A stretch of DNA of 64,000 nt from Macrostomum lignano (GCA_002269645.1 NIVC01001012.1:1-64000), one strand, 5' to 3'. Counted from the first letter of the stretch, positions 1-56,563 are shown. A program made the numbers and translations. The notes: a model not told the origin generated them from the sequence alone.

Positions 1-3000
1 AGCTGGCTTTCGCCATTGCTATAACCGCTAGTCGCTTGCTTTGCGGTGACGTACAGGCAGACACCGGTGACCACCAGGATGAACACTGAAAGCAGCAGGC
101 TAACTGCTCCAATCGCGACTGCCGCGTAGGTTCTTCTAGGAGCGTTCGGATCGGATTCGCTGCTAGCTTAGCTTGGGCTTCAGCGTCAACGGAAACGGTT
201 CAGAGCGGCTGATGTTGTAAACTGTTGTTCCTCGAAACGTCTGCCTTCCGCTACACTGGATTCTCACAAAGATGCTGCTCCATAGCAGCGCCAGAGGAAT
301 CTTTGCGAGCTTCCACCGCTGAGTTGACGTTTGCTTCATGTTCTGCACGCTTGTGTTGCAACCAAAGTCAGCTGTGCACTGCACATCGGGAAACATTCCA
401 TCCGGAATCTGCTCTTGTGACCATGACGGACATGTTTCTGTCGTTCAACTCTGGTGGGGATATTTTCATGCTTGTTTTGTCTGAAATGGCGGTCACAAAT
501 ACATCTGACAATGAGCTTTGAATTTATCAAGTGTACAAAGAATCAGTGAGCTCACAGAAAACTGCAGGCAGTTGATTGGCGCTGGTCTCTACGTCTGGGT
601 ACTCGACTCCTGACTGGTTGACCTGGCAGCGCACCAGCCATCGGCTCCGGGCCATCCACCGGCTCACCCACAGCTGGTGCTCGCTGCTGAAGTCTGCGCT
701 CTGAGGATGGATGAGAATGATTGTTACATTTACCTTCAACTCGAGTTTAGTAATTTCAACTACGTAACTACAGAACATTATTATGCATAACACGAAGTAC
801 AACAATACTGGTACTTCATTACAAATAGTTGACTTCTTAGATTTCCTCTAACCAGAAACTGCAGCTCCTCTGTCAATAAGCAGTCAGTACAACGCAAACC
901 GAGTCATAAAATTTACCTGAACTTTCTTGAGCAGCTGGGAGAATGGAACTGCCGAGTCAATTAACCAGCAGCTGTGGCTCACGGGCCAGAAGCTGCAGCT
1001 GTCTGACCTGACCCTGACTGTCCTGACCTCGTGCTCACGCCAGAACTCGGCCTGCTCAAACTCAATCCGCGTCACACAGGGCTCTGGAGAGAAAAGACGT
1101 CGGAACTGTGCGCTGGATGGTGTGCCAAATAATTCAGATTGTTTCTCTCATTGGCTTACCGCTAATAGCTGCGATGCTGTGACGTTTCGCTACAGAGGTG
1201 ACACTTCCAGTTGTTGCAAAACTTTCTTTGCAATTAATGTAATTAGCCTTCATCCACTTCGACACTGTGAAGGTAAACGTGGACTTCACAGAAAAGACAG
1301 GCAGGTTTTCCGAGTTCCAAGTGATATTCCTTTCCTGCGAATTCGATATTGAGTGAGAGAATGTGAAACACAATGCAGGATAAATCTGCCAAGCAGAACT
1401 TGGGTTGCTTACAATGACTGCAGCTGTCAGAACCTCAGCCTGTGATGAAGGTGCATTCGAACTGCTAGCTCCGATCCAGCACACGTGTCGCGGCTCCGGA
1501 GAAGAGTCTGTGGTGATGAAGCTGACGGAAGCTGTTCTTCCGGACACCAACACATCGGGAGGCGAAATTTCTGACTGAATTGGCGGAACTGAAAAGCGAA
1601 TTTCTGGTCTCGTATTACAGAGCGGCTTTAGTGGCTCCAATAAAAACATTGTGAGCTGAACTCACTTCTCAATAGCAGCATTCGCTCAAGTCTTGTATCT
1701 CTTTGACGTCCTCGACTGCAGCTGAGCAGTGCGCCCTGATGCTCCAAGCTCGATTTGAATTCAAACATTTGCTGACATTCTTCATGGATCGTTCGCAACT
1801 ACAATGCCAGAATTTCTCTCTAATCGGAATTATACCGAATGAAAATTGATGTTCATGAAAACCTACATGATTGACCCTGAATTGTTTTCCATTGCGGTTC
1901 CGTATGCTGCAGTTAAGCCTTGAGCTGGTGGTTTTTAAGCCACAGTCCCGCACGGAAAAGCAGATGGGATCGCCGACAGAAGATTTTCCGATGTTGTCCA
2001 GACTGGTGCACATGGGAGTGTCAACGTCAAGCAGCTGCAGACAGGCGGGTCGACCTGAAAAAGGCGCGAGTTGACTACAGAACTCCAGACCAGAATCAAT
2101 AATTTGAGCGCATTTACCTGTCAGGTTGAGTGCAGACCACTGCAGGTCGCCTGAGCTGTTCTTCAGAAGAATGAAGGACACTAGGACCTGCCAGTCAAGT
2201 TTGATAGCATTGGTCTTCTGAAGGCATTAACTAATATCTTAATGCATGCAACATAAGACAACAGGTCTGTGGTGACTACCTGGACATTGATCTGTCTCCA
2301 CCGGTCGCTGCTGCCGTAGGTCTCCCAGCTGGCCCGGCACGGATCCTCCAGCTGCAGCTCCAGCGGGAGGCTCGAGGCTACGACCGCTGACACGGGCGAG
2401 CCGACCGGAGCTGCTGCGAGCCACTGGCCATCTGCAACACGAGTGCTTGGCTGCTAGCTGGTCTCACACTGTGTCAGAGTGCTAATTAGATGCTAGCTGG
2501 TCTCACACTGTCTCAGAGTGCTAATTTAGATGCTAGCTGGTCTCACACTGTCTCAGAGTGCTAATTAGATGCTAGCTGGTCTCACACAGTCTCAGAGTGC
2601 TAATTAGATGCTAGCTGGTCTCGCACTGTCTCAGAGTGCTAATTAGATGCTAGCTGGTCTCGCACTGTCTCAGAGTGCTAATTGGCTGCTTGCAGGTCTC
2701 ACACTGTCTCAGAGTGCTAATTGACTGCTTGCAGGTCTCACACTGTCTCAGAGTGCTAATTAGATGCTAGCTGGTCTCACACTGTCTCAGAGTGCTAATT
2801 AGATGCTAGCTGGTCTCACACTGTCTCAGAGTGCTAATTAGATGCTAGCTGGTCTCACACTGTCTCAGAGTGCTAATTAGATGCTAGCTGGTCTCACACT
2901 GTCTCAGAGTGCTAATTAGATGCTAGCTGGTCTCACACTGTCTCAGAGTGCTAATTAGATGCTAGCTGGTCTCACACTGTCTCACACTGTGTCCCAGACT

Positions 3001-3420
3001 CCCTCTGCCTCATCATGCATCATGAGAATGAGTCGGTCAGCGTCACTCACCCCAGTCTCGCACGCTCACCGCCTCCAGCATCATCGGCTGCCTCAGCTGC
3101 ATCACAAGCCACCGAGGCCCGGACCGCACAGCAGCAGGGAATCGGTTTGTCTCTGACTGCCGACTCTCCCACCAACGGCAGTGCGCACCGCTGGGTTGCC
3201 AGGTGCGCAGAACGTCAGCCCTGCTCAGCTGCACTGTGACTGAAACATTTTGACTCAGCTGTCAGTATCTGTGGTTTTCGATTAAAGTTTTTCAAAACCT
3301 GCATATTCTGACATAGATCATCAGCTCACCTTCATGTATTGCGTCAGTGCATTGGGCTTCTGCGCTAGAGACCCGAAGGCTCAGCAGCGCCGGCAGAAGC
3401 AGCCAAATCTGCTGCTTCAT
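1..3420 (-). pseudogene. Ig-like/discoidin-like single-pass receptor paralog 1; probably frameshifted; 3' end runs off the window
   Basis: Exons 3330-3420 (signal MKQQIWLLLPALLSLRVSSAEA), 3051-3239 and 2280-2431, then exons matching copy 2 down to a TM segment (AAVAIGAVSLLLSVFILVVTGVCLY, ~50-130). Splice phases match copy 2. Relative to copy 2 there is an extra G at 388-390 and an AGCTT duplication at 165-174, both breaking the frame. Confidence 0.75.
2452..2985. repeat. 39-bp intronic minisatellite, ~13 units
   Basis: Unit TGCTAGCTGGTCTCACACTGTCTCAGAGTGCTAATTAGA in intron 2 of paralog 1. Confidence 0.95.
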
Positions 3421-4149
3421 GTTAGCATGGAGTGTCCCAGCGACCAATGTTGTCAGGGTTAAAGTTTATAGCTGTAAAAATCTCAGATAATTAACCGCAG
3501 TTCATGCCACCAGTTAGGTGCAAGGTAAACAAACTTCAAACTGATTGATGCAATGAACTGCGAAACTGTACACTTGTGTTCACGCACAGATGTTTTTACC
3601 CTGCTTTTAGGAGCGACGTATCCAACAAGCTTTGCCTCCTTCGTTTATGATTTATCGTTTATGAAAAAATGAAATGAAACGAGTCGAAAAACTTAGCCTA
3701 ACCAATTTGCCTTTGACTCCCTATTGCGGCACGACATGGATGGTCGCTCGCGCGGTAGCCTCTCAGGTAGCAGACAAGCTGGCAGAGATTCTCGGGCCTG
3801 AAAACATCTGAAATGTTCCGGTTTCGAACAGAAGTGCGGGAACTATAAACTACCTGACGTGACGCGAAAGTCAGGAATCGAATGTTGTTTGAACGAGTGT
3901 AAATTCTTGCGATATATTTGCAGTAGTAGAATAGTCTAAGTTGCTTGACGAGACACAGATCGAGAGCAATGGTTTAAATATTGCGACTATTGAAAATATT
4001 GAAGTGGAGTATTGAACTACATTGATGCACTGCGTGATTGAGCAAGTGGAGGGACTTAAGGGGCGAGGCAAGGCTAGAGCAATGATGTACACTGAATTGC
4101 ACAGAGTACGCATTGGTTTACAGAGTACATAGAAGTTTAGCATTGAATA

Positions 4150-4515: not shown

Positions 4516-4539
4516 GCCTAATTCTCTGTTCTTAGAAGC

Positions 4540-6849: not shown

Positions 6850-9800
6850 CTATTCAAAGTGATTCACTCGAATGGTGATCTCCCAGTACTCGTCTGGATC
6901 CTCATAGTAGGTGCCGTCCTGGCTTGGAGTTCGCAGCTGCAGGGCATGCGGAGTTTCCAGCGTCGGCAGGTCAGCCGGTGAAGTCTGCTGCACTTGAGCC
7001 TGGGCCACCACCCAAGCTGCCGTTAATTCTTTCTAGAATAATTGGACAGGGAGATAAACAAAAATTGTATTGTGTTTCTGTCGTGCATGTCTAGCAATTC
7101 TAGCATAGCTTATTCAACTGCATAAAGTTGAAAATCAGAAAGTTCCACCTTGCCAAACCATCCTGTATAAATAACTATATGCATAGCTAGCCTCAACTAA
7201 AACTGAACTGTCGATAAGATAAATGTCGAGATTTTTACTCAACCCAAACAGGTAGTTAGGACACTAAACATAGTAAGCAGAGGCTAATATAATAAACAGA
7301 CAGAATTGATCAAGATTAGAACCATATCGTCAGTAAATCACTTGTAGAACTTCGCCCACCACTCCTTCCCCTGCACGTGTACAAAGCATGACTTTATCGG
7401 GTGGCGATTCGGAATACTAAGATAAAGCTGAAGTTCATCATTGTGATTAACTTTGTGTCTAACTAAACTCGGTTTAACAGAGTAAATAAGAGTGCAGAAC
7501 AGGTAAGCATGGCCTTCAAAGTAATTCCATGACAGTTCAGCAATAGAAGCTGGCATGCGTCCAATAATGATGGCTCGGATTGAAGGCCATCCATCAAATC
7601 AGAGAGGGGTCGCTTTCAATAGCTCGAATCATCACATCGAAAGTTTATGCAGTCCATTTCATAATACCGCATTTTCACCAACCCAAAATTTCATTAACCC
7701 TTAAAGGGCTTGGAAAGTCTCCTGTCCCTCATTGTATTTCGACATAGTGAAAATATGGGTTTGTGAAATTTCGGCGTTGTGCGATTTCTGGTCCGTGAAA
7801 TTTCGAGCTAATGAAAGACAGTATCTTTCGACATTGTGAAGATTTGAGTTGGTGAAACAAAGAGTGGGTTAGCATAGTTTCCCAATCGAACATGACTTAT
7901 TTAAACTTCTCACTAAGTGTGTTGCTGACGTCACAAGCCTTTACAGAGGTGCTCATTAAAACTGACTCGCCTACCTGTCTCTTGACTCGAGCCTGACCAG
8001 TACAGCATCCAGCTTCTTCTTCTTCTTCTTCTTCGGGCGTGCTCGGGCCAGGGCCCATGGCACCGGGCGTCAGATGGCGCCCGCCTTCCCGAGGAAGTTC
8101 AACACCGCGACGCAGTTCTCGAAAACTGCCGCGGGCTCCGGGCTTGGCCCCCAGAGGCGGCAGCGGTGTGATGTCAGGGCGGGGCAGGAGATCAGCAGAT
8201 GGGCCGCCGTCTCCTCTCCATCGCCACAGAAGCGGCAGGTGGGGGCCACGTCAACGCCGATGGCGGCCTGGAAGCCCGCAGGGCCGGGCAGCGGTCGGCG
8301 CGCAGCTGGCAGATCAGCCGCTCCTGCCGCCGCGTGAGGTCGCTTGTCGGCTGAGGCGGCAGGCGGCCCGCCGTGCAGGCAAGGTGCCAGGCAAGCGAGC
8401 TCGTGCTCGCCGCCTCGGTGGCCGCCGCGTTGTAGATCTGGTGCCAGCGGGCGAGGCAGTAGCGGCGGACGGCAGCCTGCGCGGCAGTGCAGTGCTCGCT
8501 GCCAGAAGCTCCCTGTTGAGTTTGACACCTTATTGACGCATAGGTAGACACCGGTGGAACCCACCATGAGCGCTGCGATCGCCAGGGTCACCACTCCGAA
8601 GAAGAACAACGCTTGAGTTTGCTTAGGACAGTCTGGATCGTATTCGCTGCTGGCTTGGGGTTTCAGAGTAAACGGAAACGTTGCAGAGCGGCTGATGTTG
8701 TAAACTGTCGTTCCTCGAAACGTCTGCCTTCCGCTGCAATGGATTCTCACAAAGATGCCGCTGCTCCAACATACAGCCAGAGGAATCTTTGCGAGCTCCC
8801 ACAGCTGAGCTGACGTTTGCTTCATGTTCTGCACACTTGTGTTGCCACCAAAGTCAGCTGTGCACTGCACATCGGAAACATTCCATCCGGGATCTGCTCT
8901 TGTGACCATGACGGACATGTTTCTGTCGTTCAACTCTGGTGGGGATATTTGCAAGCTGGTTTTGTCTGAAATGGCGGTCACACATCCATCTGACTAAAGC
9001 TTCGAAGTCATCGAGTGTAAAAAGAATCAGTGAGCTCACAGAAAACTGCAGGCATTTGACCTGCGCTGGTCTCTACGTCTGGGTACTCGACTCCTGACTG
9101 GTTGACCTGGCAGCGCACCAGCCAGCGGCTCCGGGCCATCCACCGGCTCACTGGCAGCTGGTGCTCGCTGCTGAAGTCCGTGCTCTGAGGATGGATGAGG
9201 ATGATTGCTGACCATGATAAAAATGACCTAATTCTAGTTCTGGAAGTGTGAAGCCGTGAAATCGAAGCAAAGTCCAAGGAATTGATGATGTAGTGGAGAA
9301 GTTGGTAGTTGGAGAAAAACTGTAAAGTGGAGACTTCAATAGTAAAGTAGCATTAGGTTATTTAGATTTTTCCGTCAACTTGTAAACCAATGCTCTCGAC
9401 ATTGGTTGCCACTGACGATGAGGCTGAGCTGAAAAAATCCTGTAGCTCGTATATCAACTTGCTGCGCTTCTGTAAATCAACGAAGCTTAGTTAAAGCTGC
9501 GCATTGCCTTCTTCCTCATTCTCGCATCTCAACTTGTATTCAAGATTTCTACTCTTGCTTTTATTCCTACCTTATGCGAATGCATTCTGGGAGAAGTTAA
9601 TAACGGAACTTTTCATGCTTCCAAACGCCTGCGACCTGACCAATATAGACAAACTAGAAAGTAGAAGACAAAACAGCCGTGCAGGGCGAGCAGAAGACTT
9701 CTCCAGATTTTTATATTAACTAATTTGGTATGATCAATAATACAAATGGAAGGACGAAAAAACATACGAGATACAACTAAAGTGAACTGCTGTATTCTTC

Positions 9801-12553
9801 GGCTCCGCTGTTACATGCACATGTAGTTGACAGAAGTCCACCGTGAACGATGAGGAGGAGACGATTGTCTGCACGTTTTGTATTTCCTTTGTTGAGCATT
9901 TAAAAGCGGCCATATTACTGACCAGGGAGTCTTTCTGGGTGAAAGAGCTTCTGCATCTACCTGCGTGTGTCGAATACTGCTCACTAAAAGGCATGAAGTG
10001 CTACAAATAAACTGTGAAGGACTTTTAAAAGGCTGTCTGTTGCTACTGTAGTTAACAATGCTGATTAATAGTTTATGTGTTAGCTTATACTTTTAATAAT
10101 ACTGGTAAATAGATGCATAAGAACACAAGGACTCGATTAATTATTACATTCAGATTGTCTTCACCTGCACTTTCTTGAGCAGCTGGGAGAATGGAGCTGC
10201 CGAGTCGATTAACCAGCAGCTGTGGCTGACGGGCCAGAAGCTGCAACTGTCTGACCTGACCCTGACTGTCCTGACCTCGTGCTCGCGCCAGAACTCGGCC
10301 TGCTCAAGCTCAATCCGCGTCACGCAGGGCTCTGTGGAGAAAATACATTGGAACTTTGCAATGGGTAACGTACCAGATAATCTGGATTGTTTCTCTCATT
10401 GGCTTACCGCTAATAGCTGTGATGCTGTGACGCTTCACCACAGAGGTGACACTTCCAGTTGTTGCAAAACTTTCTTTGCAATTAATGTAATTAGCCTTCA
10501 TCCACTTCGACACTGTGAAGGTAAACGTCGACTTCACAGAAAAGACAGGCAGGTTTTCCGCGTTCCTAGTGATCTTCCTTTCCTGCGAATTCGATAGTGA
10601 GTGAGAGAATGTGAAACACCAGCTAAGCTAAATCTGCCAAGCAGAACTTGGGTTGCTTACAATGGCTGCAGCTGTCAGAACCTCAGCCTGTGATGAAGGT
10701 GCATTCGAACTGCTAGCTCCGATCCAGCACAGGTGTCGCGGCTCCGGAGAAGAGTCTGTGGTGATGAAGCTGACGGAAGCTGTTCTTCCGGACACCAACA
10801 CAGCGGGAGGCGAAATTTCTGACTGAATTGGCGGAACTGAAAGGCGAATTTCTTGTCTCGTATTACAGAGCGGCTTTAGTGGCTCCAATAAAAACATTGT
10901 GAGCTGAACTCACTTCTCAATAGCAGCATTCGCTCAAGTCTTGTATCTCTTTGACGTCCTCGACTGCAGCTGAGCAGTGCGCCCTGATGCTCCAAGCTCG
11001 ATTTGAATTCAAACATTTGCTGACATTCTTCGTGGATCGTTTGCGTCTGCAATGCCAGAATTTCTCTCTAATCGGAATTATACCGAATGAAAATTGATAT
11101 TCATGAAAACTTACATGATTGACCCTGAATTGTTTTCCATTGCGGTTCCGTATGCTGCAGTTAAGCCTTGAGCTGGTGGTTTTTAAGCCGCAGTCCCGCA
11201 CAGAAAAGCAGATGTGATCGCCGACAGAAGATTTTCCGATGTTGTCCAGACTGGCGCATATGGGAGTGTCAACGTCAAGCAGCTGCAGACAGGCAAGTCG
11301 ACCTGAAAAAGGCGCGAGTTGAGCACTGAACTTAATCAATAAATCAATAATTTGAGCGCATTTACCTGTCAGGTTGAGTGCAGACCACTGCAGGTCGCCT
11401 GAGCTGCTCTTCAGAAGAATGAAGGACACTGGGACCTGCCATTCAAGTTTGATAGCATTGGTCTTCTGACATCAGCTTTAGATATTTATATGCATGCGAC
11501 ATAAGGCAGCAGGTCTGTAGTGACTACCTGGACATTGAGCTGCCTCCACCGGACTCTGCTGCTGCCGAAGGCCTCCCAGCTGGCGCGGCACGGATCCTCC
11601 AGCTGCAGCTCCAGCGGGAGGCTCGAGGCTCCGACCGCTGACACGGGCGAGCCGACCGGAGCTGCTGCGAGCCACTGGCCATCTGCAACACGAGTGCTTG
11701 GCTGCTAGCTGGTCTCACACTGTCTCAGAGTGCTAATTAGATGCTAGCTGGTCTCACACTGTCTCAGAGTGCTAATTAGATGCTATCAGGTCTCACACTG
11801 TCTCAAAGTGCTAATTAGATGCTAGCTGGTCTCACACTGTCTCAGAGTGCTAATTAGATGCTAGCTGGTCTCACACGGTCTCAAAGTGCTAATTAGATGC
11901 TAGCTGGTCTCATACTGTCTCAGAGTGCTAATTAGATGCTAGCTGGTCTCACACTGTCTCAAAGTGCTAATTAGATGCTAGCTGGTCTCACACTGTCTCA
12001 GAGTGCTAATTAGATACTAGCTGGTCTCACACTGTCTCAGAGTGCTAATTAGATTCTAGCTGGTCTCACACTGTCTCAGAGTGCTAATTAGATGCTAGCT
12101 GGTCTCACACTGTCTCACACTCTTTGTCCCAGACTCCCTCTGCTTCATCATGCATCATGAGAATGAGTCGGTCAGCGTCACTTACCCCAGTCTCGCACGC
12201 TCACCGCCTCCAGCATCATCGGCTGCCTAAGCTGCATCAAGAGCCACCGAGGCCCGGACCGCACAGCAGCAGGGAATCGGTTTGTCTCTGACTGCCGACT
12301 CTCCCACCAACGGCAGTGCGCACCGCTGGGTTGCCAGGTGCGCAGAACGTCAGCCCTGCTCAGCTGCACTGTGACTGAAACGTTTTGATTCAGCTGTCAT
12401 TATCTGTGGTTTTCGATTAAAGTTTTTCAAAACCTGCATATTCTGACAGATCATCAGCTCACCTTCATGTTTTGCGTCAGTGCATTGGGCTTCTGCGCTA
12501 GAGACCCGAAGGCTCAGCAGCGCCGGCAGAAGCAGCCAAATATGCTGCTTCAT
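6850..12553 (-). CDS. Ig-like/discoidin-like single-pass receptor paralog 2: 12 exons, ~724 aa before a LINE insertion in exon 11
   Basis: Exons 12463-12553, 12186-12374, 11528-11682, 11366-11435, 11115-11302, 10914-11046, 10661-10836, 10408-10582, 10165-10331, 9040-9184, (8507-8989 + 7975-8010), 6850-7016. All introns are GT-AG with matching phases and the exons sum to 2175 nt. Features: signal peptide, Ig-like strands (HQGALLSCS; FITTDSSPEPRHLCW), TM FFFGVVTLAIAALMVGSTGVYLCV, tail ending GTYYEDPDEYWEITIRVNHFE*. Domain names are pattern-based inference. Confidence 0.8.
8015..8506 (-). mobile_element. 5'-truncated LINE (CCHC zinc knuckle, (GAA)n tail) inserted in a receptor TM exon
   Basis: GC-rich. 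Encodes ...CRFCGDGEETAAHLLISCPAL...VLNFLGKAGAI*. (CTT)7 at 8013-8033 is the 3' tail. AGCT duplication at 8011-8014 and 8507-8510. Internal frameshift near 8280. Confidence 0.9.
11703..12115. repeat. 39-bp intronic minisatellite, ~10 units
   Basis: Same unit as 2452-2985, in intron 2 of paralog 2. Confidence 0.95.
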
Positions 12554-14714: not shown

Positions 14715-17700
14715 TTACAAGTCCACCACTGGACCTGTCCTCGGTTCTAAATGTATATCATTCTGTTTAGAATCTTCGTTCGGAAGGTGAGCACTTTCGT
14801 CGGGATTTCTTCTGCGACGAGCTCTCTTCCAAACAAGCAATATTGCTAGAGTTAAAAGCAGCAGGACGGCCACTGCAGCTGCCACTAGAATTAGCGGTGC
14901 TCGAAGCGTTTCCTGATCCGCTGCCGAGGCTTCTCTGTTGCTCAACAGCTTCTCCACCGCCAGCAGCAGATCCCGTTGGCAGTGCAGCTGGCTGCTGCAG
15001 TCCCTCTGACTCGCAGCATCGGCTACGTTTATAAAGCTTATCAAGGAGAGCGACGGCTTACTGCAATCGTCGAATGTTATCGTCGGACTGACTGATTGAT
15101 CTTCAACGGCTGTTATTGAGGCGCAGGAGCCTTGGATGGGTTGGCCTGATCTGGAATCGGTCAATGCACGGCCGAATCACTACTCTTATATGCACCTGCG
15201 TGTCTTGTGCAATCGAATCATCTACAGTGCAGAGAAAAAAGCAGAAAAATAAGTGTATGGATTGAAGTTTGAATGCAGTAACGTACAAGCGAGCAAGTGT
15301 ATCTGATAGAGATCTCCAGAATACAGTATTAAGCAGACTACTAGAAGTAGTAAGACAAAATATATATAGCACAAACTTTATGTCACGCGTTCATACTTCA
15401 TTTTTTGCAGTTTTACCTTTTACATTAAATTTTCGAACCTCGAAATATGGTAAACGTTAACCTGAAATCGACCAAAGTTTCACCCTTTCTATTCAATAAC
15501 CCCACTTGTAGAATGATAAAATTCCTCTTGTAACCTCATCAAAAACCTGTTGAGGCCAAGAGAACTAAGAACTACGAGGCTCTGAGAGAAGTGAAAACCG
15601 ATCAGTGAGCCTTTGTTGAAGCCTTTGTTATTTGATTATCGAGGGCTGCGTTATTGATCAGTTGATTTCTATTGAGTTATTGAATTTGAAGCCTCCCTAT
15701 TCCTACTAAGGGATTAGATAAGATCCATTGGACTGATTCCGATACTCTTAGACGATTATTGATTTATTGATTTTGCTACCGTAGAGTAACCGATTAGGTT
15801 CACACGACTACAATTCCATAATTTCTAGAAGAAGACGCCTTTTCTGGAAGACCTCGTTATATTTTTATAGAGTTGATTCTATTACTAGGGTGCATCCCGG
15901 ACATCTCTGATTACTGATCGTAAGGAATATATTAACGTCGATGAATTAAATTGTTACGTGATCTCAAATTCGGCCGACCTCATGAAACTCCGGAGGAAAA
16001 TTGCTGCTAGGAAACGAGCTCGACGAATCTGGCCGATGAGAAGAAAAGCCCACAACAGTAAGTAATCACAAGAGTCTGTTCCCAGACTTGCGGTCTGGAA
16101 GCGGGAGTGCGTGCGTTTAGACACTAGACCTAATTCTCTGTCTCTTTCCCTCTCTAGTGTGCTACTGCAGAATTTTCACAAGTTGCCGTTGTACTCGTAA
16201 AAACATAGTCTAAATGCCAGCAGTTAACTTGCTGTCTTGTTGCTGGCATGCAGCTTATCGTAGGCATATTGCGCGTATCTACTCGATCACTCAGCTATTG
16301 CGTGTACTTCGCTTTGACCAAAAAAATGCATGGAATTATCGAATAGCGAAATAATGCAAAACTGTCAACAAGAACGAGTAGCGAAATCAATCAGAACACA
16401 CAAAGCTAGTTTTGAATTGGAATTTACCAGACACTGGAGACAAGATTAGAGAAAATGGTACTACTCAACCGAAAAGTATGCGCTAGAAATTTTCAATCCA
16501 GAATTCAAGCGCAATCTGTCACAGTTAGGACTGCGAGACCAAATTGATACCTTACGAGAACAGGACCTGCCCAGAGTGCATGTGGGGTTAGAAAGTGAAG
16601 TTCACTTCCTGTTTAAGTGTAGTTGGAACTTCTATAGTGCTCTCCATGATGATACATTTGAACAGGAAATACATGTGTACACACATGCATACATACATAC
16701 ACACATACATACATGCATACATACATACATACATACATACATACATACATACATACATACATACATACATACATACATGCATACATACATACGTACACAC
16801 ATACATACATACACATACACACATACATAAAAACATACATACAGACATACATACATACACACACACACATACATACATACATACATACATACATACATAC
16901 ATACAGACATACATACATACACACACACACATACATACATACATACATACATACATACATACATACACACATACATACATACATACATACATACATACAT
17001 ACATACACACATACATACATACATACTTACATACAATACATACATACAGTACATATACATACATGCATAGTACATACATACAATACATACATACATACAG
17101 ACATACACACATACATACATACATACATACATACATACATACATACATACATACATACATACATACATACATACACACACACATACATGCATACATACAT
17201 ACATACACACATACATACATACATACATACATACATACACACATACATACATACATACATACACACATACATACACACATACATACATACATACTTACAT
17301 ACAATACATACATACAGTACATATACATACATGCATAGTACATACATACAATACATAAATATACTTTAAACTAGAGGTCCATCCTGCATTTGGCAGAAAT
17401 AAACTTGCAGAAATATTTCTTATTCAACAGCAGAATTCCCTCAGCAGCCCGCAACTTACACAAACATACTCGAATTCGACACTGAAGCCAGTCTATAACA
17501 GCCGCTAGCATTACTTCTGACCACAGAAAATAAACTGCTGCTCTCCAATCGGTAAAACATTCCAATACGAAGCGTTTGACTCAGATTTAGCGGCCTCCTG
17601 TTGGGATATGTGAGCTCTCTGGCTGTGTCTAAAAAAATTTAGTAAATCGGTTCAATGATGATGCTTAAGATTTTGACTTAACTCTTTTGAGTAACTAAAC

Positions 17701-32920: not shown

Positions 32921-33269
32921 CTGAAAATTGGTAAAAATCAGAGGTTAGTAGAGTTACGACAAAAACAGTCACAGCAGAATTTGGTGGTCTTTCTCGAGGC
33001 AAACATTAGTGAGGATGCCAACTTGCTTGAAACTAGAGTCTGACGTGTTGCTATCCAGATCCCCTTTAGTACCATTCCACTACAAACACCAGTTTTTCTT
33101 GGTTCACCTACCAGCAAAGCGGTCCACATAATGTACATATTAGTATTGTAGTGAGCCGTGTTTCTTGACAATACTCTATTATCCGCATGATGATTCTGTG
33201 GATAAAGTTAAAAACAGAGGATGGTAAATATGGAGATAATAGCGTAGGAGTTTGTTGAAGTTGGTGCAA

Positions 33270-35904: not shown

Positions 35905-37602
35905 ATGAGTTTGAGACGGATCAACTGGAAGCTGGCCGCGTACCTGCTGTTACTAACGGTTTCAGCCAGATACTCTGAGGGTCAGCCGGAGGGATTCTCT
36001 GAAGGAAGTCAGGAAGATGATTTTGATAGCGATGAAGAAGCTGATGAATCGTCTGATAGTTTAATGGAGCGGATCAAAAGCGAAAGTCAAGTATTAGATT
36101 CCTCAAGGACTGAACATTTTTTACAAGCCTTAGAAGGTGGCGACGCTTCGCGAACTCTTCATATCGTTCATTAGCAGCAGACAGAGCTAACAAGCCGTGT
36201 GCTGCAGGCTCAGTTGCAGCAGGCCAACGACGATGATAGTCTTGACAGGCTCGGAAAACTTTTAGACTTCAAATTCATGCTGAAGAAGTTGTATCGCTCA
36301 TCATCATCTGGTGAAGAGTTTGACAGTCATTCAGCTTCCATAAACCAATCCGCTGGTGCCACTGCTCGTCCATTCAACAGCTTATCTCTTGACAATTTTG
36401 GTGAAGCAGGACAAGCAAGCACGGCAACTGCACAACCTGCTTTTGGAGGGCACTCTGACAGCCTTCAAAGATCTTTCGAAGATCCAACGCATCAACTGGT
36501 CTGCGACTCCCCCTTCTCATCCAGCCGGAGTGAGGCACCAGACAAGAACCTAGTAGATGAATTCAGCAATTTAAAGGTTTCGCCACCCTTGGCAAAGCAA
36601 ACATCACAATCTGCTTCTCAGAAGCGTAAAACAAAGGCTAACCGAGAAAAGGAGTCGCCAAGGACACCGAGCTGTCTGAATTCTTTCGGCCGGCCAGTCG
36701 ATTGGTTTGTCACCATTAAAAAAAACTTAGGTTGGAAATACTTGTCCGTGACTGCAGCAGGTTGGGAGCAAGATATGAAGCTTTATAGGCCTAATAATGA
36801 CATTCGAAAAAGTGGGCCAGTTTTGAATACGCTGATGCAAGCTACTGCCAATGTCAGAAGGCCATCCCACATAATACTCGCATACAACGATCAATATCTT
36901 AATACCTCATCGCAACGCTACGCTCACGCCAAAGGAGTCGTGATGTTTGACACCTGTGAAAAACGAGGGTTCTGGATTGTTCACTCGATTCCAAAGTTTC
37001 CAGACTTAAGCACGTTATTTTTGGTATTTCCTTACAGCGCAAAAAGATATGCGCAAAGCTTCGGCTGCTCCACAATCAAAGACCGACAACAATTCAATTC
37101 TGTTTTACAACAGCTTCGGGTAATGAATGTGCCGATATACTACTCCAGGCCCACTTCCGATATTGTGCCACATCAGCCGGCGGAAAATCAAATTCCACAT
37201 CTCCCGTTAGTTTATCTTGGATCACTTGGCCAGGTTATTCATTTAACAAAAGCAAATAATTATAATTCCTGTATATATTGTGACCTATCTAACCATTTAC
37301 AAACAAACATGCTGACAGAAACATGGAGGACACAACAAAATCAAACTTATCATCACATCCAAAGCGATATTAAAGTGTTCGGAGTCGACTTTGCTAATGG
37401 CTTTCAGTACAGCGCTAATCAGGATCATTCGAAATGGAGCGTCAGTGACAACAGTTCGAAGCCTTGGCTTTGCATTGGGGACTTGAACCGACGCATTACA
37501 GATAGGGGAGGCGGCGTGCTGTGCTTTCAGAGCGAATTGGCGCAGCGACCTTTCTGCCGAGCAGCTCGAACTGCGAGCTCGCTTCCATTCAATTGCTATT
37601 GA
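35905..37602 (+). CDS. DNASE2: Secreted deoxyribonuclease II-like protein with a ~250-aa acidic/Ser-rich N-terminal extension; one in-frame TAG at 36172-36174
   Basis: Signal-like MSLRRINWKLAAYLLLLTVSARYSEG. DNase II motifs SCLNSFGRPVDWF, AHAKGV, FWIVHSIPKFP, DHSKW, CIGDLNR, RGGG. The ORFs 35905-36174 and 36199-37602 are in the same frame. The symbol is family-level only. Confidence 0.85.
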
Positions 37603-39788: not shown

Positions 39789-40531
39789 ATGCGACCGTCT
39801 CAAAGAATCTCCGGTCTCGCTCTCATCTGTCTGCTATTGGCAAAGTTCCATCTGGCAGTCGCCAGAGATTACACTCGAACCTACCTGGGCTGCTACCCGG
39901 ACCCAGATAACAAGGACTTGACAGGCCTTACCGGAGTCTCAGCGCTGCTTGGCTACACTGTTAAGTCTTGGTTGGCTGTGCAGCACAGTTCGATGACGTT
40001 CGAATTGTGCGGCTCCATCTGCTCGGCCGGCGGCTTCCCCTACATGGGGCTTCAGGTTCGCGTCGAGTGCTTCTGCGGCTGGAGCTACGGGAATCATGGT
40101 GCCCCTGTCGAAGCCGACTGCGATATGAGTTGCGAAGGAAATTCGAGCCAGATCTGCGGCGGAGATACCAGCAGCTCAGTGTTCGGACTGCAATACACCA
40201 GTGAGTCAATTTCATTACAATGACTCAATTAACCGACCGTAATCGTGTACAAGTAGCGTTCAACTGATGTAATGAGACATTAAACTTTTTTTTAATTCCA
40301 GGCCCGAACCTTTTCAAGCGATCAGCCAGGACTTACTTCTCCGTGACCAACCCGACCTCGTTCTACAGGAATGTGACTGCCGTGGAAAAGGCTCAGTGTC
40401 TGCTGCAGTGCATCAACGACTGTCAGGCTGTGCTGTACAACCAGCAGCTGAGCTTGTGCCATCTGCTGAAGTTTGTCCTGTTGCCAACCGAGCTAAATAC
40501 TACTGATGGAGAGTTCTACATCAGATGCTGA
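39789..40531 (+). CDS. Secreted WSC-domain + PAN/apple-like protein, 2 exons, ~213 aa
   Basis: Exon 1 39789-40200 (signal; YLGCY...CGSIC...GLQ...ECFCG...CDMSCEGNSSQICGG); phase-1 GT-AG intron 40201-40301; exon 2 40302-40531 (QCLLQCINDCQAVLY...LCHLL). Confidence 0.9.
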
Positions 40532-45404: not shown

Positions 45405-48047
<2,643 letters not shown>

Positions 48048-50200: not shown

Positions 50201-53200
50201 CTAACGGTAGTACACGAAGGTGCTCCCATCGAGTTCGTAATGCCCAGCCGCCTCAGTCCAGCATTCTTCATCGCTAGAGGACAGACTATCTGGCTCCGTG
50301 TCCTCCTCCACATCATCTATGGCGGCTACAGTCACTAAGACTGGCGAAGCTGGTGGATTCTGAAATTTAAAATTGCAGTCAAGTTTTATTGCTGATGTCT
50401 AACAGCTGACACACAAATGTCTAACAGACTGACACACGGATGTCTAACAGCTGACACACATGTCTAACAGCTGACACACGGATGTCTAACAGCTGACACA
50501 CATATGTCTAACAGCTGACACACATGTCTAACAGCTGACACACGGATGTCTAACAGCTGACACATATGTCTAACAGCTGACACACGGATGTCTAACAGCT
50601 GACACACGAATGTCTAACAGCTGACACATATGTCTAACAGCTGACACACGGATGTCTAACAGCTGACACACATGTCTAACAGCTGACACACAAATGTCTA
50701 ACAGACTGACACACGGATGTCTAACAGCTGACACACATGTCTAACAGCTGACACACGGATGTCTAACAGCTGACACACGGATGTCTAACAGCTGACACAT
50801 GGATGTCTAACAGCTGACACATATGTCTAACAGTTGACACACGGATGTCTAACAGCTGACACATATGTCTAACAGCTGACACATGGATGTCTAACAGCTG
50901 ACATACAGATGTATAACAGACTGACACACGGATGTCTAACAGCTGACACACAAATGTCTAACAGACTGACACACGGATGTCTAACAGCTGACACACATGT
51001 CTAACAGCTGACACACGGATGTCTAACAGCTGACACACATGTCTAACAGCTGACACACGGATGTCTAACAGCTGACACATATGTCTAACAGCTGACACAC
51101 GGATGTCTAACAGCTGACACACGGATGTCTAACAGCTGACACACATGTCTAACAGCTGACACACAAATGTCTAACAGACTGACACACGGATGTCTAACAG
51201 CTGACACACATGTCTAACAGCTGACACACGGATGTCTAACAGCTGACACACGGATGTCTAACAGCTGACACATGGATGTCTAACAGCTGACACATATGTC
51301 TAACAGTTGACACACGGATGTCTAACAGCTGACACATATGTCTAACAGCTGACACATGGATGTCTAACAGCTGACATACAGATGTATAACAGACTGACAC
51401 ACGGATGTCTAACAGCTGACATACATATGTCTAACAGACTGACACTCGGATGTCTAACAGCTGACACACGGATGTTTAACAGCTGACACACGGATGTTTA
51501 ACAGCTGACACACGGATGTCTAATAGCTGACACACGGATGTTTAACAGCTGACACACGAATGTCTAACAGCTGACACACGGATGTTTAACAGCTGACACA
51601 CGGATGTCTAACAGCTGACACACGGATGTTTAACAGCTGACACACGGATGTCTAACAGCTGACACACGGATGTCTAACAGCTGACACACGGATGTCTAAC
51701 AGCTGACACACGGATGTCTAACAGCTGACATACATATGTTTAACAGCTGACACACGGATGTCTAACAGCTGACATACATATGTTTAACAGCTGACACACG
51801 GATGTCTAACAGCTGACACACGAATGTCTAACAGCTGACACACGGATGTTTAACAGCTGACACACGGATGTCTAACAGCTGACACACGGATGTCTAACAG
51901 CTGACACACGGATGTCTAACAGCTGACACACGGATGTCTAACAGCTGACACACGGATGTCTAACAGCTGACACACGGATGTCTAACAGCTGACATACATA
52001 TGTTTAACAGCTGACACACGGATGTCTAACAGCTGACATACATATGTTTAACAGCTGACACACGGATGTCTAACAGCTGACACACGGATGTACAACATTT
52101 TAAACCAATAATTTTAAAGGACCCGAGGGCCGGAGTTATCTGACCCCTTGAATTTAGCCACTTAACCTGTAGGTAAAATTTCACAATGTCCCAGATTTCA
52201 CTTACAATAGCTGAAGTTGAAGTTGCGGTAAATATCACAAAATTCAGTTTATAGTATAAATAATAACTACAGAATAACGCCGGTAAAATAAGCCAGATTT
52301 TTATCAGATTTCGCAAGTTCGCTTTCCAATGAGATTTTAATTACAAGCGCATGTTATTATTAAAATAGCTGGTATTTTCGCAAAAGTAGAACTTCAGCCA
52401 GCAGATCATAAACAGTTTGTACAGTGTTTACCATCATTGCAGCATGCTCGTCAATTCGATGGCTATTGGTATGATAGCATTTTTAGTATGGTCACATTTG
52501 CCACTTAACCTTCTCAAAAAACTACGTAATCAATGCATGCGCCATACCTGATGAAAGGCCCCTGAGGCTGCTGTGGAGACTGTGCAATTGGTTTCGCTGC
52601 CAAGCTCGTCATCATTCGACTCATCGTACGAGTATAGCGAGGACGTCGCTCTCACCCTGGAGAATCTGACAGCCAGCTTGCAGCCCACACCGATGGCGGA
52701 GACTGCAACTGCGAGCAGAAATATGCTGACGAATATTCGCTTGGCGTTCGCGGACGATTTCCCTGTGCAATTGAAATGAGGCCATTGATTTTAGTGCTAT
52801 CTTTAAGGTAAAATCAGATCTGCAGCTATTTGGTCATCACTCACTTCCAGTTGAGAACTTGGCTTCAACATTCGGGTACGGCAGGCCTGACTGACTGACG
52901 CTGCACCTGACCAGCCAGTCCCGGCTTTCCTGACCTCCGGGTAGCCGAGCCCAGTGAGAGCTGCTGAAGCCGGTCTGCTGCAGTTTGCATTGGCGAGTTT
53001 CTATAATTATTAATTAATTGCTGATAGGCATTGCGATTCCTCTGAACTTACCTGTGCGCTGCTCATTTTTAGCCGGATGTGGGCCGCTGCACCTCCACCG
53101 ACCTGAGTTAGCCAGCAGCTGTGGCTGACATTCCATACGCTGCACTGCTGTGACGTCACTCTGACTGTGAGACATCGATGCTGGATGCTGATCAAGTGGA

Positions 53201-56200
53201 TGACCGTCAGGCAGGGCCCTGTAACGGTTAGCATTTTGCTTGGAATGTAATAATAATAATAATAGTCGTAATACTCATAATAATAACCATTGAGTACACC
53301 TTGCCCATTGAGTACACCTTGCCCATTGAGTACACCTTGCCCATTGAGTACACCTTGCCCATTGAGTACACCTTGCCCATTGAGTACACCTTGCCCATTG
53401 AGTACACCTTGCCCATTGAGTACACCTTGAATTATAAGAATAGTAATAACAATGATTGATTGCACCTGCCCCCCATGGGCAGATGTGCAACCGACAGCTC
53501 AGCCGCAGCTATTGCGCGGCGCATCTGAAAGCTGCGTACGGCTGTTCAGGACTGGGGGGCCTGGGGGGGTCGCCACACACACACCCTCAATTACCCGAGC
53601 TAATGCCGGCACCCATTTTTACAGCTGGGTGAACTGAAGCAATGCAGAGTTAAGTGTTTTGCTCAAGGACACAAATTGTTCCAGTGGGATCGGGAAACGA
53701 ACCCCCGACCTTCAAGTTATGAATCCGATGCTCTAACCACTAGGCTGAAACCCCCGACATTTGGAATGTAAATCGACCCAGTAATTCTGTTAACTGTTTC
53801 GTTTTTGAAGATTCTAAAAATATTTGGAGTTCGAATCTTATGCAGACAGACAGGGCATCAAAGGGTGCCAAATTAGTCAGCTGAATTGCCAACAGAAATG
53901 CAGTTATGCGCACACTCAGTTATGGAAACAATTCTAAAACAGCTCACCACTTATTGCTGATATAAAATAACTGTCGTTGTTTTGCACTTCGACGTTTTGC
54001 TCGCCTTCAAACCTGCCCTCGCATTTTAATGTGCCGTTCAGCATCGCGACGCTGACCTGGAATCTGAACTGAGACGCCACCGCCACCAGGGTCCGATTGT
54101 TGTGATTTTTTGCGACAGCTGTTTCTAGCTGGAAGTCGTTTAAATGTCAGCAGTAATTAACAGTCAGCAGTAATTAACAGTCAGCAGTAATTAAATGTCA
54201 GCAGTAATTAACAGTCAGCAGTAATTAACAGTCAGCAGTAATTAACAGTCAGCAGTAATTAACAGTCAGCAGTAATTAACAGTCAGCAGCAATTAACAGT
54301 CAGCAGTAATTAACAGTCAGCAGCAAAACTGTCAGCAGCAATTAACAGTCAGCAGTAAAACTGTCAGCAGTAATGAACAGTCAGCAGTAATTAACAGTCA
54401 GCAGTAATTAACAGTCAGCAGTAATTAACAGTCAGCAGTAATTAACAGTCAGCAGTAATTAACAGTCAGCAGTAATTAACAGTCAGCAGTAATTAACAGT
54501 CAGCAGTAATTAACAGTCAGCAGCAATTAACAGTCAGCAGTAATTAACAGTCAGCAGTAATTAACAGTCAGCAGTAATTAACAGTCAGCAGTAATTAACA
54601 GTCAGCAGTAATTAACAGTCAGCAGTAATTAACAGTCAGCAGCAAAACTGTAAGTCACAGCTGATCTCATAGGGATGATCTGCAGAAAGTCATGAGTTCA
54701 TCTCACATTTGTGCGGTTTTCATCCAGACGCCACTCAGAGCTGGCAGAAATGATGCTGCAGCTGTGATGCAGTGCTGGGTAAGCCGGAGCTGATGTGACA
54801 TTCACAGTGACGCTGCTGCCGCTGACCCACACGGGTGACACCGATACTGACAGGCTGGCAGGGGGAACTGAAACATAAACATGTTGAAGTAATTGCAACA
54901 TAACTTCCTCAACAGAAACCCATCCCTGATTAAAACGCTCTCACATAAAACCCCAATAGTCTGCTCAATGCGCTCAGCAGGTCGGTCTGTCAGAAAGCAG
55001 CTGAGCGTCGCATCGTGCATTGCCGAGGTGGCATTGAGTTTGAACACTGCGGGCTGTGCCTGGCTGTTCAGCTGCCGTGGTGAAGACTGAAGAGTTTGAT
55101 AAAAAAATTTAGCAACGCTTCGCACAATTCAAACTATTCAAAAAGATTGGCGCACCTGTTTCAGTTGATGAGTTGACCCGTTGCTGTAGTTCAATAGACA
55201 GCCAAGCGAGCCGTCAAGACAGCTCGAAACTGAGAGGCAGGCCATGTTCCCATCCTTTATGGCTTGCAGGTTTCTAAACGGACATAGAGTGCTGTTCATC
55301 ACGGTGAGGTTCAGTGGAGCAACAGGACCTAAAAATAACGTGACGTCTTGTGACTCGAAATTTAACGCATCAATTAGAAGTAGGTATTCTATTAATATTT
55401 TAATTAAAGACCTGACAGTTTCAAGGCACTCCAACTTAGTGGAACATTCGTACAGCTCCTGACCAGTATGTACAGGACTGTGCTCTGAAGCAGAAAAATG
55501 CACTTGCTTTTTATCAATACTTTTAATAAATAATCCAATCATGCATAGGTACACTACAGGTTCAAGGCAAACATTGCTACCTCATTGTAAGCTCTTCCAA
55601 GCTGCCTCCACCGGTCGCTGCTGCCGAAGGCCTCCCAGCTGGCGCGGCACGGATCCTCCAGCTGCAGCTCCAGCGGGAGGCTCGAGGCTCCGACCGCTGA
55701 CACGGGCGAGCCGACCGGAGCTGCTGCGAGCCACTGGCCATCTGCAACACGAGTGCTTGGCTGCTAGCTGGTCTCACACTGTCTCAGAGTGCTAATTAGA
55801 TTCTAGCTGGTCTCACACTGTCTCAGAGTGCTAATTAGATGCTAGCTGGTCTCACACTGTCTCAGAGTGCTAATTAGATGCTAGCTGGTCTCACACTGTC
55901 TCAGAGTGCTAATTAGATGCTAGCTGGTCTCACACTGTCTCAGAGTGCTAATTAGATGCTAGCTGGTCTCACACTGTCTCAGAGTGCTAATTAGATGCTA
56001 GCTGGTCTCATACTGTCTCAGAGTGCTAATTAGATGCTAGCTGGTCTCACACTGTCTCAGAGTACTAATTAGATGCTAGCTGGTCTCACACTGTCTCACA
56101 CATTGTGTCCCAGTCTCCTTCTGCCTCATCATGCATCATAAGAATGAGTCGGTCAGCGTCACTCACCCCAGTCTCGCACGCTCACCGCCTCCAGCATTAT

Positions 56201-56563
56201 CGGCTGCCTCAGCTGCATCACAAGCCACCGAGGCCCGGACCGCACAGCAGCAGGGAATCGGTTTGTCTCTGACTGCCGACTCTCCCACCAACGGCAGTGC
56301 GCACCGCTGGGTTGCCAGGTGCGCAGAACGTCAGCCCTGCTCAGCTGCACTGTCGCTGCAACATGTTTGTTAAAATAAACCCAGCTTTCGTGCCCAGCGC
56401 ATAAAAAAACGGTTGATAAAGAGTTTGCTTCAAGTTCTTGGCCAAACTTTTCTTGCTTACGATTTCTGTTGACTGCAGTTTGTGTGCAGTTTGAGAACGC
56501 CTTGATGAACTGCAGACTGAAAACTAGAAATAGCAGAGGCGTCCTGCACCGCCAGTAAGCCAT
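50201..56563 (-). CDS. Ig-like/discoidin-like single-pass receptor paralog 3: 12 exons, possible frame break at the start of the TM exon
   Basis: Exons 56461-56563 (signal), 56167-56355, 55581-55741, ~55412-55484, ~55153-55328, ~54945-55088 (HDATLSC), ~54710-54867, ~53947-54127, ~53053-53219, ~52845-52980, ~52550-52800 (TM IFVSIFLLAVAVSAIGVGCKL), 50201-50359 (...HYELDGSTFVYYR*). Phases parallel paralog 2, except that I could not find an in-frame acceptor for the TM exon. Confidence 0.7.
50393..52093. repeat. 21-23-bp minisatellite in the last intron of paralog 3
   Basis: ATGTCTAACAGCTGACACACGG units with internal block duplications. Confidence 0.96.
53287..53429. repeat. 18-bp tandem repeat x8 next to a SINE tail
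   Basis: CCCATTGAGTACACCTTG units. Confidence 0.95.
53445..53746 (-). mobile_element. tRNA-Met-derived CORE-like SINE
   Basis: Head AGCCTAGTGGTTAGAGCATCGGATTCATAACTTGAAGGTCGGGGGTTCG resembles elongator tRNA-Met (CAT loop); body matches the other copies. Confidence 0.85.
54145..54650. repeat. 17-bp minisatellite in intron 7 of paralog 3
   Basis: AACAGTCAGCAGTAATT units. Confidence 0.96.
55762..56098. repeat. 39-bp intronic minisatellite, ~8 units
   Basis: Same unit as at 2452 and 11703. Confidence 0.95.

Follow-up and report, generated by a model that had tools for sequence, protein, structure and literature searches.

The locus described here raises the question of how genes can be kept nearly identical over one domain while the rest of their length diverges to the edge of recognition, and of what such genes might do at the cell surface. 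It lies in a stretch of 64,000 nucleotides (nt) from the flatworm Macrostomum lignano (positions 1-64000 of NIVC01001012.1, assembly GCA_002269645.1), hereafter called the window, which carries an array of genes for transmembrane (TM) proteins. An initial annotation, made from the sequence, took this array for a candidate recognition locus evolving by birth and death. Our analysis leads to a different emphasis: with a probability that we put at about 0.6, the array comprises two families of type I membrane glycoproteins specific to Macrostomum, of which one consists of constant-head receptors with the head kept by gene conversion.

Two gene families on one strand

Six-frame self-comparison of the window reveals two sets of paralogous exons on the minus strand, which define families A and B. 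Three family-A genes (A1-A3) and four family-B genes (B1-B4) are found on this strand, and the plus strand carries a DNase II gene and a WSC gene between B3 and B4. Exons of the array match annotated M. lignano proteins exactly (P0006 for A1, P0005 for A2, P0013 for A3, P0001 for B3 and P0039 for B1), so that the seven minus-strand genes from two paralogous families listed in the initial annotation are fully borne out. The family-A proteins consist of a signal peptide, an orphan head of about 100 amino acids (aa), a chain of immunoglobulin (Ig)-like domains, a TM segment and a tyrosine-rich tail; in family B, a β-rich N-domain is followed by a region resembling the C-type lectin-like domain (CTLD), a TM segment and a short tail. 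Direct reading of the translations finds signal peptides in A1-A3 and B3 and, in both families, one TM segment per protein and a tail of ~40-110 aa in which Pfam recognizes no domain, in keeping with the short non-catalytic tails described initially. The conserved intron phases also described there hold as well: they run 2,1,2,1,2 in all four B genes and alternate between 1 and 0 in family A.

A homogenized head on diverged genes

The head protein is 92-97% identical across the family-A paralogs, against 24-29% for the remaining ectodomain between subfamilies. The diversification of ectodomains that had been attributed to the whole cluster thus applies to the family-A stalk and to family B, but not to the membrane-distal head of family A. 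The near-identity of the head is a property of the DNA. It covers a cassette that runs through exon 2 and intron 2 and takes in ~110 nt at the start of exon 3 (minus strand, 2292..3251 in A1, 11538..12381 in A2 and 55602..56367 in A3). Over this cassette A1 (3251..2292) and A3 (56367..55602) share 95.5% of their nucleotides, and elsewhere only 62 bp of the two genes can be aligned. Family-A genes on two other contigs, NIVC01001089.1 and NIVC01000958.1, contain the same cassette with 92-97% DNA identity, which brings the number of copies to at least six on three contigs.

The edges of the cassette are sharp. When the six copies are aligned, identity sets in at the exon-2 acceptor and stops after the exon-3 codons for ...RASWE (the end being ...GCCAGCTGGGAG); just outside this block it is 42% over the last 80 nt of intron 1 and 50% over the 60 nt past the head. 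Intron 2, which lies entirely inside the block, contains a 39-bp minisatellite (TGCTAGCTGGTCTCACACTGTCTCAGAGTGCTAATTAGA) that Tandem Repeats Finder delimits to 2452..2984 in A1 (13.6 copies), 11703-12117 (10.6 copies) and 55762-56098 (8.6 copies), and the non-repeat flanks of this intron are 96.6% and 98.8% identical. An array of the same 39-bp minisatellite is also found on NIVC01001089.1 (L003 4510-5557), ~4.6 kb upstream of head exon 2 of the paralog P0012, with no adjacent head exons.

Substitution patterns in the head agree with the identity of its intron. The proportion of synonymous differences (pS) in the head is 0.035 among old paralogs, lower than the 0.07 of the youngest duplicates, and the ratio of nonsynonymous to synonymous proportions (pN/pS), which rests on few substitutions, is 0.5, the differences being few and not preferentially silent. 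Taken together, this ratio and the low pS imply that the identity of the head is not kept by purifying selection on amino acids alone. The head exons are also rich in guanine and cytosine (GC 0.68, and 0.78 at third codon positions, GC3), compared with 0.53 and 0.60, respectively, in the other exons of A1. The cassette therefore combines the non-coding identity, sharp edges and depressed synonymous divergence by which concerted evolution is recognized. Since the intron is conserved, the edges are sharp, pS is depressed and GC is enriched, we infer that the head has most likely been homogenized by recurrent gene conversion, which was probably GC-biased and for which the intronic minisatellite may serve as a hotspot. 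Family B contains no block homogenized at the DNA level, its exon identities being 43-71% throughout.

Outside the cassette, the Ig-like exons of A1, A2 and A2' (the homeologous copy of A2 on NIVC01000712.1) have pN/pS of 0.40-0.48 at pS of ~0.07 and an intron divergence of 0.12, i.e. they are under moderate purifying selection without a net excess of replacements.

Domains of family A

The initial annotation described the family-A proteins as discoidin-like and Ig-like, and the family-B proteins as CUB-like and lectin-like. Searches with Pfam models of the proteins of both families, spliced or unspliced, returned neither discoidin nor Ig, CUB or lectin domains of the C type, nor anything else significant. 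In family A, the Ig label is nonetheless supported by the predicted fold. The AlphaFold model of P0012, calculated from a 12-sequence alignment, exhibits β-sandwich domains over residues ~200-600, with mean predicted local distance difference test (pLDDT) values of 44-86 in 10-residue blocks. Compared with the PDB by Foldseek, this model has 511 matches at E<=1e-3; of the 50 that were listed, 46 are Ig-domain proteins; multi-Ig ectodomains matched with a probability of 1.00 include SYG-2/SYG-1 (5.7e-11), shark UrIg2, the IgM B-cell receptor, PirB/LILRB3, Necl-4 and SIRPα. A sequence profile search of the PDB with family A found the Ig domain of CADM4 at E=0.03. The predicted stalk may accordingly be called Ig-like, though no Pfam Ig model reaches its cut-off on family A, the best being C2-set_2 in P0009 (18.3 bits vs 21).

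The discoidin label fares worse. The head, searched alone, matches no Pfam family at E<=10 and has no relative in the PDB; no discoidin chain appeared in the PDB searches at E<=10 and there is no match to PF00754. Over residues 21-170 of the P0012 model, where the head is located, the block means of pLDDT are 23-34 and the model is unusable. We therefore abandon the discoidin designation and refer to the head as an orphan.

At least three types of cytoplasmic tail can be distinguished: HY[DE]LDG..FV.Y in A1 and A3, YYEDPDEYWEI in A2, and YDVP/YINW, YEDP/YSQI/YVNY and YDYP/SVYLVL in paralogs at other loci. Tyrosine motifs recurring among them are YEDP/YDVP/YDYP, YxN and HY[DE]LDG, and the SVYLVL of the paralog P0021 resembles, as read by eye, an immunoreceptor tyrosine-based inhibition motif (ITIM). 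Judging by these motifs, the tails could feed into SH2-type signaling.

Domains of family B

For family B, the evidence from folds and profiles is of a weaker kind. Neither the CUB (PF00431) nor the Lectin_C (PF00059) family of Pfam matches any of 36 members at E<=1. The AlphaFold model of B3 (13-sequence alignment) is poor, with a mean pLDDT of 42, and the best Foldseek matches of this low-confidence model are enriched for CUB domains (Neto2, neuropilin, MASP-1/2, C1s and PCPE-1, E between 1e-3 and 0.25). In the profile search of the PDB, positions 162-201 of the family-B profile align with the start of a DC-SIGN-type CTLD at E ~0.5, and six of the nine matches are CTLD chains (DC-SIGN/DC-SIGNR/CLEC4M and snaclec, E 0.45-1.3), all of them on the same N-terminal motif. 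Inspected by eye, the family-B alignment shows conserved C0-C0' and C2-C3 cysteines and a conserved RIGLF motif, with C1 and C4 both absent, a pattern that would correspond to a CTLD without the C1-C4 disulfide. The sugar-binding motifs EPN/QPD and WND are likewise absent, by eye, from the aligned positions in all members of two family-B alignments. The CUB-like and lectin-like labels may thus be kept as descriptions of weak fold and profile signals, but not as Pfam assignments. Among the names given automatically in UniProt, CUB is frequent, but it stands beside ZP, LAM_G, Tub, PAZ, BRCT, Ricin-B, Exostosin and others; as these names are mutually contradictory, they were discarded as evidence of domain identity.

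Gene structures and the state of the copies

A1 (3420..1, minus strand) is cut by the start of the contig, beyond which its cytoplasmic tail lies. Its exon 1 (3420..3330) encodes the signal peptide MKQQIWLLLPALLSLRVSSAEAQC, the head begins with exon 2 (3239..3051), exon 3 starts at 2431 and the TM exon is at 167..3. A2 (12553..6853, minus strand), which matches P0005 exactly, is a tandem duplicate of A1, and the ~94% DNA identity of the two indicates that the duplication was recent; its tail exon (7032..6853), which contains YYEDPDEYWEI, differs from that of A1. A3 (56563..50204, minus strand), an exact match to P0013, has ten exons for the signal peptide, head, Ig-like domains, TM segment (52760..52548) and tail (50359..50204), all of them open in the comparison with the paralog P0010. 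In A1 and A2 the alternation of intron phases between 1 and 0 gives two exons per Ig-like domain, and A3 has the same phases at homologous junctions; GT-AG junctions were found by script at eight of the nine A3 introns, and none at 54946->54880.

B3 (33188..31207, minus strand) is a complete gene of six exons encoding 445 aa, identical to P0001 (BOX15_Mlig020468g1). The models of the other three B genes were derived by hand from its exon structure. They comprise exons e2-e6 on the minus strand: 23133-22826, 22353-22275, 22193-21946, 17628-17460 and 15150-14718, all open, in B1 (23133..14718); 29387-29140, 29051-28970, 28877-28636, 28543-28381 and 27322-26884, all open, in B2 (29387..26884); and 48047-47797, 47439-47373, 47273-47029, 46591-46423 and 45762-45408 in B4 (48047..45408). 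Intron 2 of B4 carries a (CTAT)n microsatellite. Canonical GT-AG junctions and open e2-e6 accompany the shared intron phases in all four B genes, and the proteins are only ~25-35% identical. P0039, a partial model, contains e2-e4 of B1, and its upstream exon matches the window exactly; this possible upstream exon of B1 (23891-23829) has a phase-2 donor and an open reading frame (ORF) without an ATG.

As stated in the initial annotation, the array mixes intact with disrupted copies. A3 and B3 look intact. In A2, the TM/juxtamembrane coding exon is interrupted by a 467-bp fragment (8000..8466, minus strand, in the sense of A2) of a 5'-truncated non-long-terminal-repeat retrotransposon, a long interspersed nuclear element (LINE) with a zf-RVT match (PF13966, E=8e-4) and a (GAA)n tail; the read-through frame stops at 8073. 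In A2' this site is empty and the exon ends ...QAQVNGQ|GT. A1 contains an extra C in a run of C at ~388, a 1-nt frameshift relative to A2, which may be an assembly error, given the homopolymer and the PacBio assembly. Intron 4 of B1 has received a DIRS-like retroelement (~17650..21790, minus strand) with a tyrosine recombinase, a reverse transcriptase (RT) distributed over two frames, an RT thumb and a SAP-motif ORF. Hits to RT, RT thumb and tyrosine recombinase lie in neighboring ORFs on one strand, as befits a DIRS-like element, in which a tyrosine recombinase takes the place of a DDE integrase. The Pfam matches (Phage_integrase 1e-4, RVT_1 7e-5 and 6e-3, RVT_thumb 4e-3) are all below the curated cut-offs and, together with the division of the RT between two frames, they mark the element as degenerate. 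It accounts for the GC-rich block of the window (GC 0.58-0.63). The 304-aa ORF at its 5' end (20838-21749, minus strand) begins with the SAP motif (PF02037, E=2e-8, above the cut-off) and is an unusual gag-side ORF.

Distribution of the two families

Every family-A hit in the databases (19 of 19) comes from M. lignano. An exhaustive HMMER search with a family-B profile, covering 1.84 billion representatives, found 35 proteins: 25 from M. lignano (20 by look-up and five by earlier naming), one Logan contig and nine for which no look-up was made. A one-to-one ortholog among conserved adhesion genes was found for neither family in these searches, and every hit with a source is from M. lignano. 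As far as these sequence searches reach, both families appear to be specific to Macrostomum or to flatworms. We found no account of either family, or of gene conversion in Macrostomum, in the literature, and the gene identifiers (Mlig020468 and others) are absent from searchable main texts and from those supplements of M. lignano papers that were checked.

The mixing of the two families is not confined to the window, since A and B genes form mixed head-to-tail arrays at other loci too. The A gene P0012 on NIVC01001089.1 has, ~1 kb downstream and in the same orientation, a neighbor of 414 aa with family-B tblastn hits, which matches P0033 in length and contig; NIVC01000958.1 carries two A genes in succession, and a B array is found elsewhere on the 516-kb contig NIVC01000712.1. 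In two database models, P0014 and P0011, members of B and A are fused. Several of the UniProt/WormBase models P0014, P0011, P0003, P0004, P0016 and P0018 fuse neighboring genes of the cluster (B with A, or A with A), and one fused model is named 'protein kinase domain-containing', which the visible sequence does not explain. The public annotation of the cluster loci is thus unreliable.

Positions 1-5000 of the window, which include all of A1 with its introns, are identical to a segment of NIVC01000712.1 save for one difference in minisatellite copy number; past ~5 kb the identity falls to 80-97% with structural differences. This second copy is either a homeolog with very recent conversion or a redundancy of the assembly at the contig end. 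In it, the cluster terminates just past A1 at a nucleoside hydrolase gene.

A proposed constant-head receptor and its alternatives

We propose that the family-A proteins are most likely surface receptors or adhesion molecules that bind a common partner through the constant head and differ in reach and signaling. In this arrangement an invariant head of ~100 residues would cap a variable Ig-like stalk, built of two exons per domain with phases 1-0-1, followed by a TM segment and one of several tyrosine-motif tails. The conversion tract would run from the exon-2 acceptor through the minisatellite intron to the RASWE codons of exon 3, and selection on the head protein would hold the edges of the block at domain boundaries, leaving the remainder of each A gene to diverge freely under moderate purifying selection. 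The head would then engage one common partner, and stalk and tail would vary the reach and the intracellular signaling. The members of family B, with their putative beta-sandwich N-domain, degenerate CTLD-like domain, TM segment and short tail, would be uniformly diverged neighbors that may act as partners or co-receptors of A.

Several observations weigh against this proposal. The head could not be modeled, and its pN/pS depends on the few substitutions mentioned above; one Ig-region segment was out of frame in the pN/pS comparison of the young copies, which adds minor noise. Family A was searched with a word-indexed tool only, which leaves room for distant relatives outside Macrostomum, and other Macrostomum genomes are probably outside the searched databases. 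The fold assignment of family B is weak, as the quality of the B3 model implies. Finally, A3 is the only A copy in the window that is neither damaged nor incomplete, and B3 the only B copy with an identifiable start exon: neither scans from ATG to GT at several stringencies nor tblastn with the N-termini of paralogs found a start-codon or leader exon for B1, B2 or B4. Part of the cluster may therefore be non-functional.

It is tempting to consider the array an immune or allorecognition locus shaped by birth and death, the ectodomains of which sense pathogens or non-self conspecific tissue. Recent duplication, retroelement damage and possible pseudogenes do fit birth-and-death dynamics, and so do lineage-specific, diverged type I proteins; this much of the initial annotation stands, but the hypervariable distal domain that such a locus would be expected to possess is replaced by an invariant one (92-97% identity at the tip against 24-29% below it), and pN/pS of ~0.4 reveals no replacement excess. 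The expansion of surface-receptor families in tandem, with every sourced hit in one species, would suit an immune function, as would a stalk fold that matches LILR/PirB/SIRP-type ectodomains and tails with tyrosine motifs, including the ITIM-like one of P0021. The adjacent genes for a secreted DNase II and a WSC/PAN protein could be added to this list, but they are single, unrelated genes on the opposite strand. To our knowledge, allorecognition is not a trait of this solitary, non-colonial flatworm. An immune or allorecognition role would rest purely on analogy, and we regard it as unlikely.

A comparably small chance may be given to the possibility that the two families are reproduction-related recognition proteins of sperm, egg or antrum, evolving fast under sexual selection or conflict in a hermaphrodite. 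Their absence, by gene identifier, from the M. lignano supplements that were checked and their pN/pS below 1 speak against it, in spite of the strict lineage restriction and deep divergence of the paralogs, which such proteins would be expected to exhibit. Surface proteins of the CUB-like and lectin-like kind often serve in gamete recognition. A paper on Macrostomum (PMC7336406) bears the title 'RNA-Seq of three free-living flatworm species suggests rapid evolution of reproduction-related genes'.

The damage to individual copies invites yet another explanation, according to which the array is a decaying graveyard of genes, mostly pseudogenes in a repeat-rich, satellite-flanked region, with only B3 and A3 possibly functional. 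Besides the LINE in the A2 exon, the A1 frameshift and the start exons not found for B1, B2 and B4, it could appeal to the dense minisatellites, to the 6.4-kb satellite array described below and to the public annotation, which over a 22-kb stretch (window 21204-43188) calls B3 only. The same annotation, however, misses the clearly intact DNase II gene, so that its missing calls say little, and the A1 frameshift falls in a homopolymer of a PacBio assembly. The four B copies, at only ~25-35% protein identity, have kept their five shared exons open and the splice sites intact, which is unlike decay, and the A copies retain pN/pS of ~0.4. We consider wholesale decay improbable.

That the head cassette is instead a mobile or exon-shuffled DNA module, which spread recently and was exonized in many A genes without any conversion, might seem to follow from its sharp edges, its own acceptor and donor, its internal minisatellite and the orphan array of that minisatellite, but it is a poor explanation, because the 3' edge lies inside exon 3, where the frame runs on in each copy into variable sequence that is unrelated, the edges show neither terminal repeats nor target-site duplications, head-exon peptides occur only within family-A gene regions in the loci compared, and at least six independent in-frame insertions are far less parsimonious than conversion.

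Comparison with known receptor systems

The constant-head arrangement proposed for family A can be set against several known systems. KIR, LILR/PirB, SIRP and FcR-like proteins are, like family A, type I receptors with Ig chains that are encoded in tandem and possess short non-catalytic tails with tyrosine motifs, and the families of the leukocyte receptor complex evolve by duplication, domain loss, pseudogene formation and conversion between paralogs, much as the present array appears to do. There is no sequence homology between these receptors and family A, in which Pfam Ig models miss the domains and an orphan, conserved, non-Ig head sits on the Ig chain; moreover, the former are vertebrate proteins that function by the logic of ITIMs and of the corresponding activation motifs (ITAMs) and by pairing with adaptors, whereas the latter is a flatworm family known from sequence and model. 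The best structural matches of family A, SYG-1/SYG-2 of the IrreC/Kirre-nephrin group and the nectin/Necl/CADM proteins, are all single-pass with several Ig domains and a short tail, but they are conserved as one-to-one orthologs among bilaterians and have an Ig domain at the tip, unlike the lineage-specific, multi-copy family A with its non-Ig head.

Hydractinia Alr, Botryllus FuHC/fester, snail FREPs and urchin Sp185/333 share with the present array a lineage-specific, clustered and duplicated set of genes for surface or secreted proteins of the Ig superfamily type. In these systems, it is the distal or ligand-binding part that is hypervariable and polymorphic. Family A exhibits the opposite layout, a constant tip on a variable stalk, and its evolutionary logic would, by analogy, resemble that of paired Ig receptors more than that of allorecognition molecules.

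Proteins with one conserved and one divergent part are known from other families as well. Conotoxins combine a conserved signal and pro-region with a divergent remainder, and in the PSG/CEACAM proteins the N domains are said to provide a case of one module nearly identical among paralogs with the remainder divergent. The family-A module differs from both in including an intron and a minisatellite at 97-99% identity, which indicates homogenization at the level of DNA rather than conservation at the level of codons.

Family B recalls the CUB proteins Neto and neuropilin and the CTLD proteins layilin, CD302 and those of the attractin type, by its weak B3 fold and CTLD profile matches, respectively. 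Its order of domains with a TM segment matches no known family of CUB or CTLD membrane proteins, and it is without an EPN/QPD or WND motif. For the recurrent interleaving of A and B, an analogy is offered by NKR-P1:Clr (Klrb1:Clec2), where two families of surface proteins interspersed in one cluster are reported to act as receptor and ligand (PMC4041007). Both of these families of the natural killer gene complex are C-type lectin-like type II proteins, unlike A and B. A pairing of A and B as receptor and ligand would be reminiscent of this system.

Neighboring genes and repeats

The DNase II gene (35905..37602, plus strand) encodes a signal peptide, a long acidic/low-complexity N-terminal region and a catalytic domain that matches PF03265 over profile positions 1-313 of 326 (E=2.1e-51, 175 bits). 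Past the signal-peptide/acidic region and ahead of the catalytic domain, its frame contains a TAG (36172-36174), which could be removed by a phase-0 mini-intron of ~40 nt at 36165-36205 (GTTCAT...CTAAC...CAG); otherwise the gene is interrupted. The second plus-strand gene (39789..40528) encodes a secreted protein with a WSC domain (PF01822, E=4e-17, 62.8 bits vs a cut-off of 27.8) and may have further exons downstream. Its exon 2 covers half of the PAN/apple profile PF00024 at E=1.6e-3, and with 18.7 bits it stays below the cut-off of 21.4. Of the neighbors named in the initial annotation, DNase II and WSC are thus recovered, and PAN appears as a match below threshold. No convincing coding exons were seen on a cursory look at 33700-35900 and 40600-45400, and no RNA family of Rfam was found within the window.

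The GC content of the window ranges from 37 to 63%, and its minisatellites are many. Micro- and minisatellites are unusually dense, with periods of 4, 10, 17, 18, 20, 22, 24, 27/34, 45 and 74 bp, several of them in A and B introns; they are located at 4552-5445, 16678-17361, 27758-28153, 33287-33725, 43775-43944, 44430-45114, 47498-47781, 48752-49822, 50394-52091, 53287-53429 and 54146-54642. Introns and intergenic DNA of the cluster also contain four copies of a dispersed repeat of ~200 bp (14374-14570 and 26574-26797 on the minus strand, 23376-23612 and 53431-53768 on the plus strand), which are 75-90% identical when translated; the repeat is probably a small non-autonomous transposable element. 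On the A3 side the cluster is bounded by a 23-bp satellite (consensus AAACATAAAAGAGCCACCATGTC, ~180 copies, with higher-order periods of 46 and 69 bp), which occupies the last 6.4 kb (57616-64000; 56800-57400 and 62500-62950 belong to the same feature); the array is broken by a duplicated unique segment of ~300 bp.

Implications

Clustered, lineage-specific receptors of the Ig superfamily and conversion in multigene families are both known. What is new here is the combination of an invariant orphan head that is divided by an intron with a minisatellite, the homogenization of this head across loci, and a co-clustered CUB/CTLD-like family. The locus provides a clean natural example of concerted evolution limited to a domain, in which the exons next to the homogenized module have diverged until they are barely recognizable, and it opens the questions of how conversion tracts are bounded and whether an intronic minisatellite can act as a conversion hotspot.

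In its strongest form, our proposal would describe a novel receptor family in which an invariant, structurally novel ligand-binding head has been homogenized across at least 12 ancient paralogs at several loci by targeted conversion seeded in the minisatellite, with the interleaved, freely diverging family B as the linked binding partners. We think it quite unlikely that all of these elements hold together; if they did, they would amount to a flatworm-specific receptor-partner system with a constant tip and a variable stalk and tail. The analysis in any case defines two orphan receptor families, with dozens of gene models and a head that has no relative in Pfam or the PDB, and corrects the contradictory automatic UniProt names of their members (CUB, ZP, LamG, BRCT, PAZ and others). 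M. lignano is a flatworm model amenable to transgenesis and RNA interference, and its lineage-specific surface proteins, to which both families would belong, are almost entirely uncharacterized.

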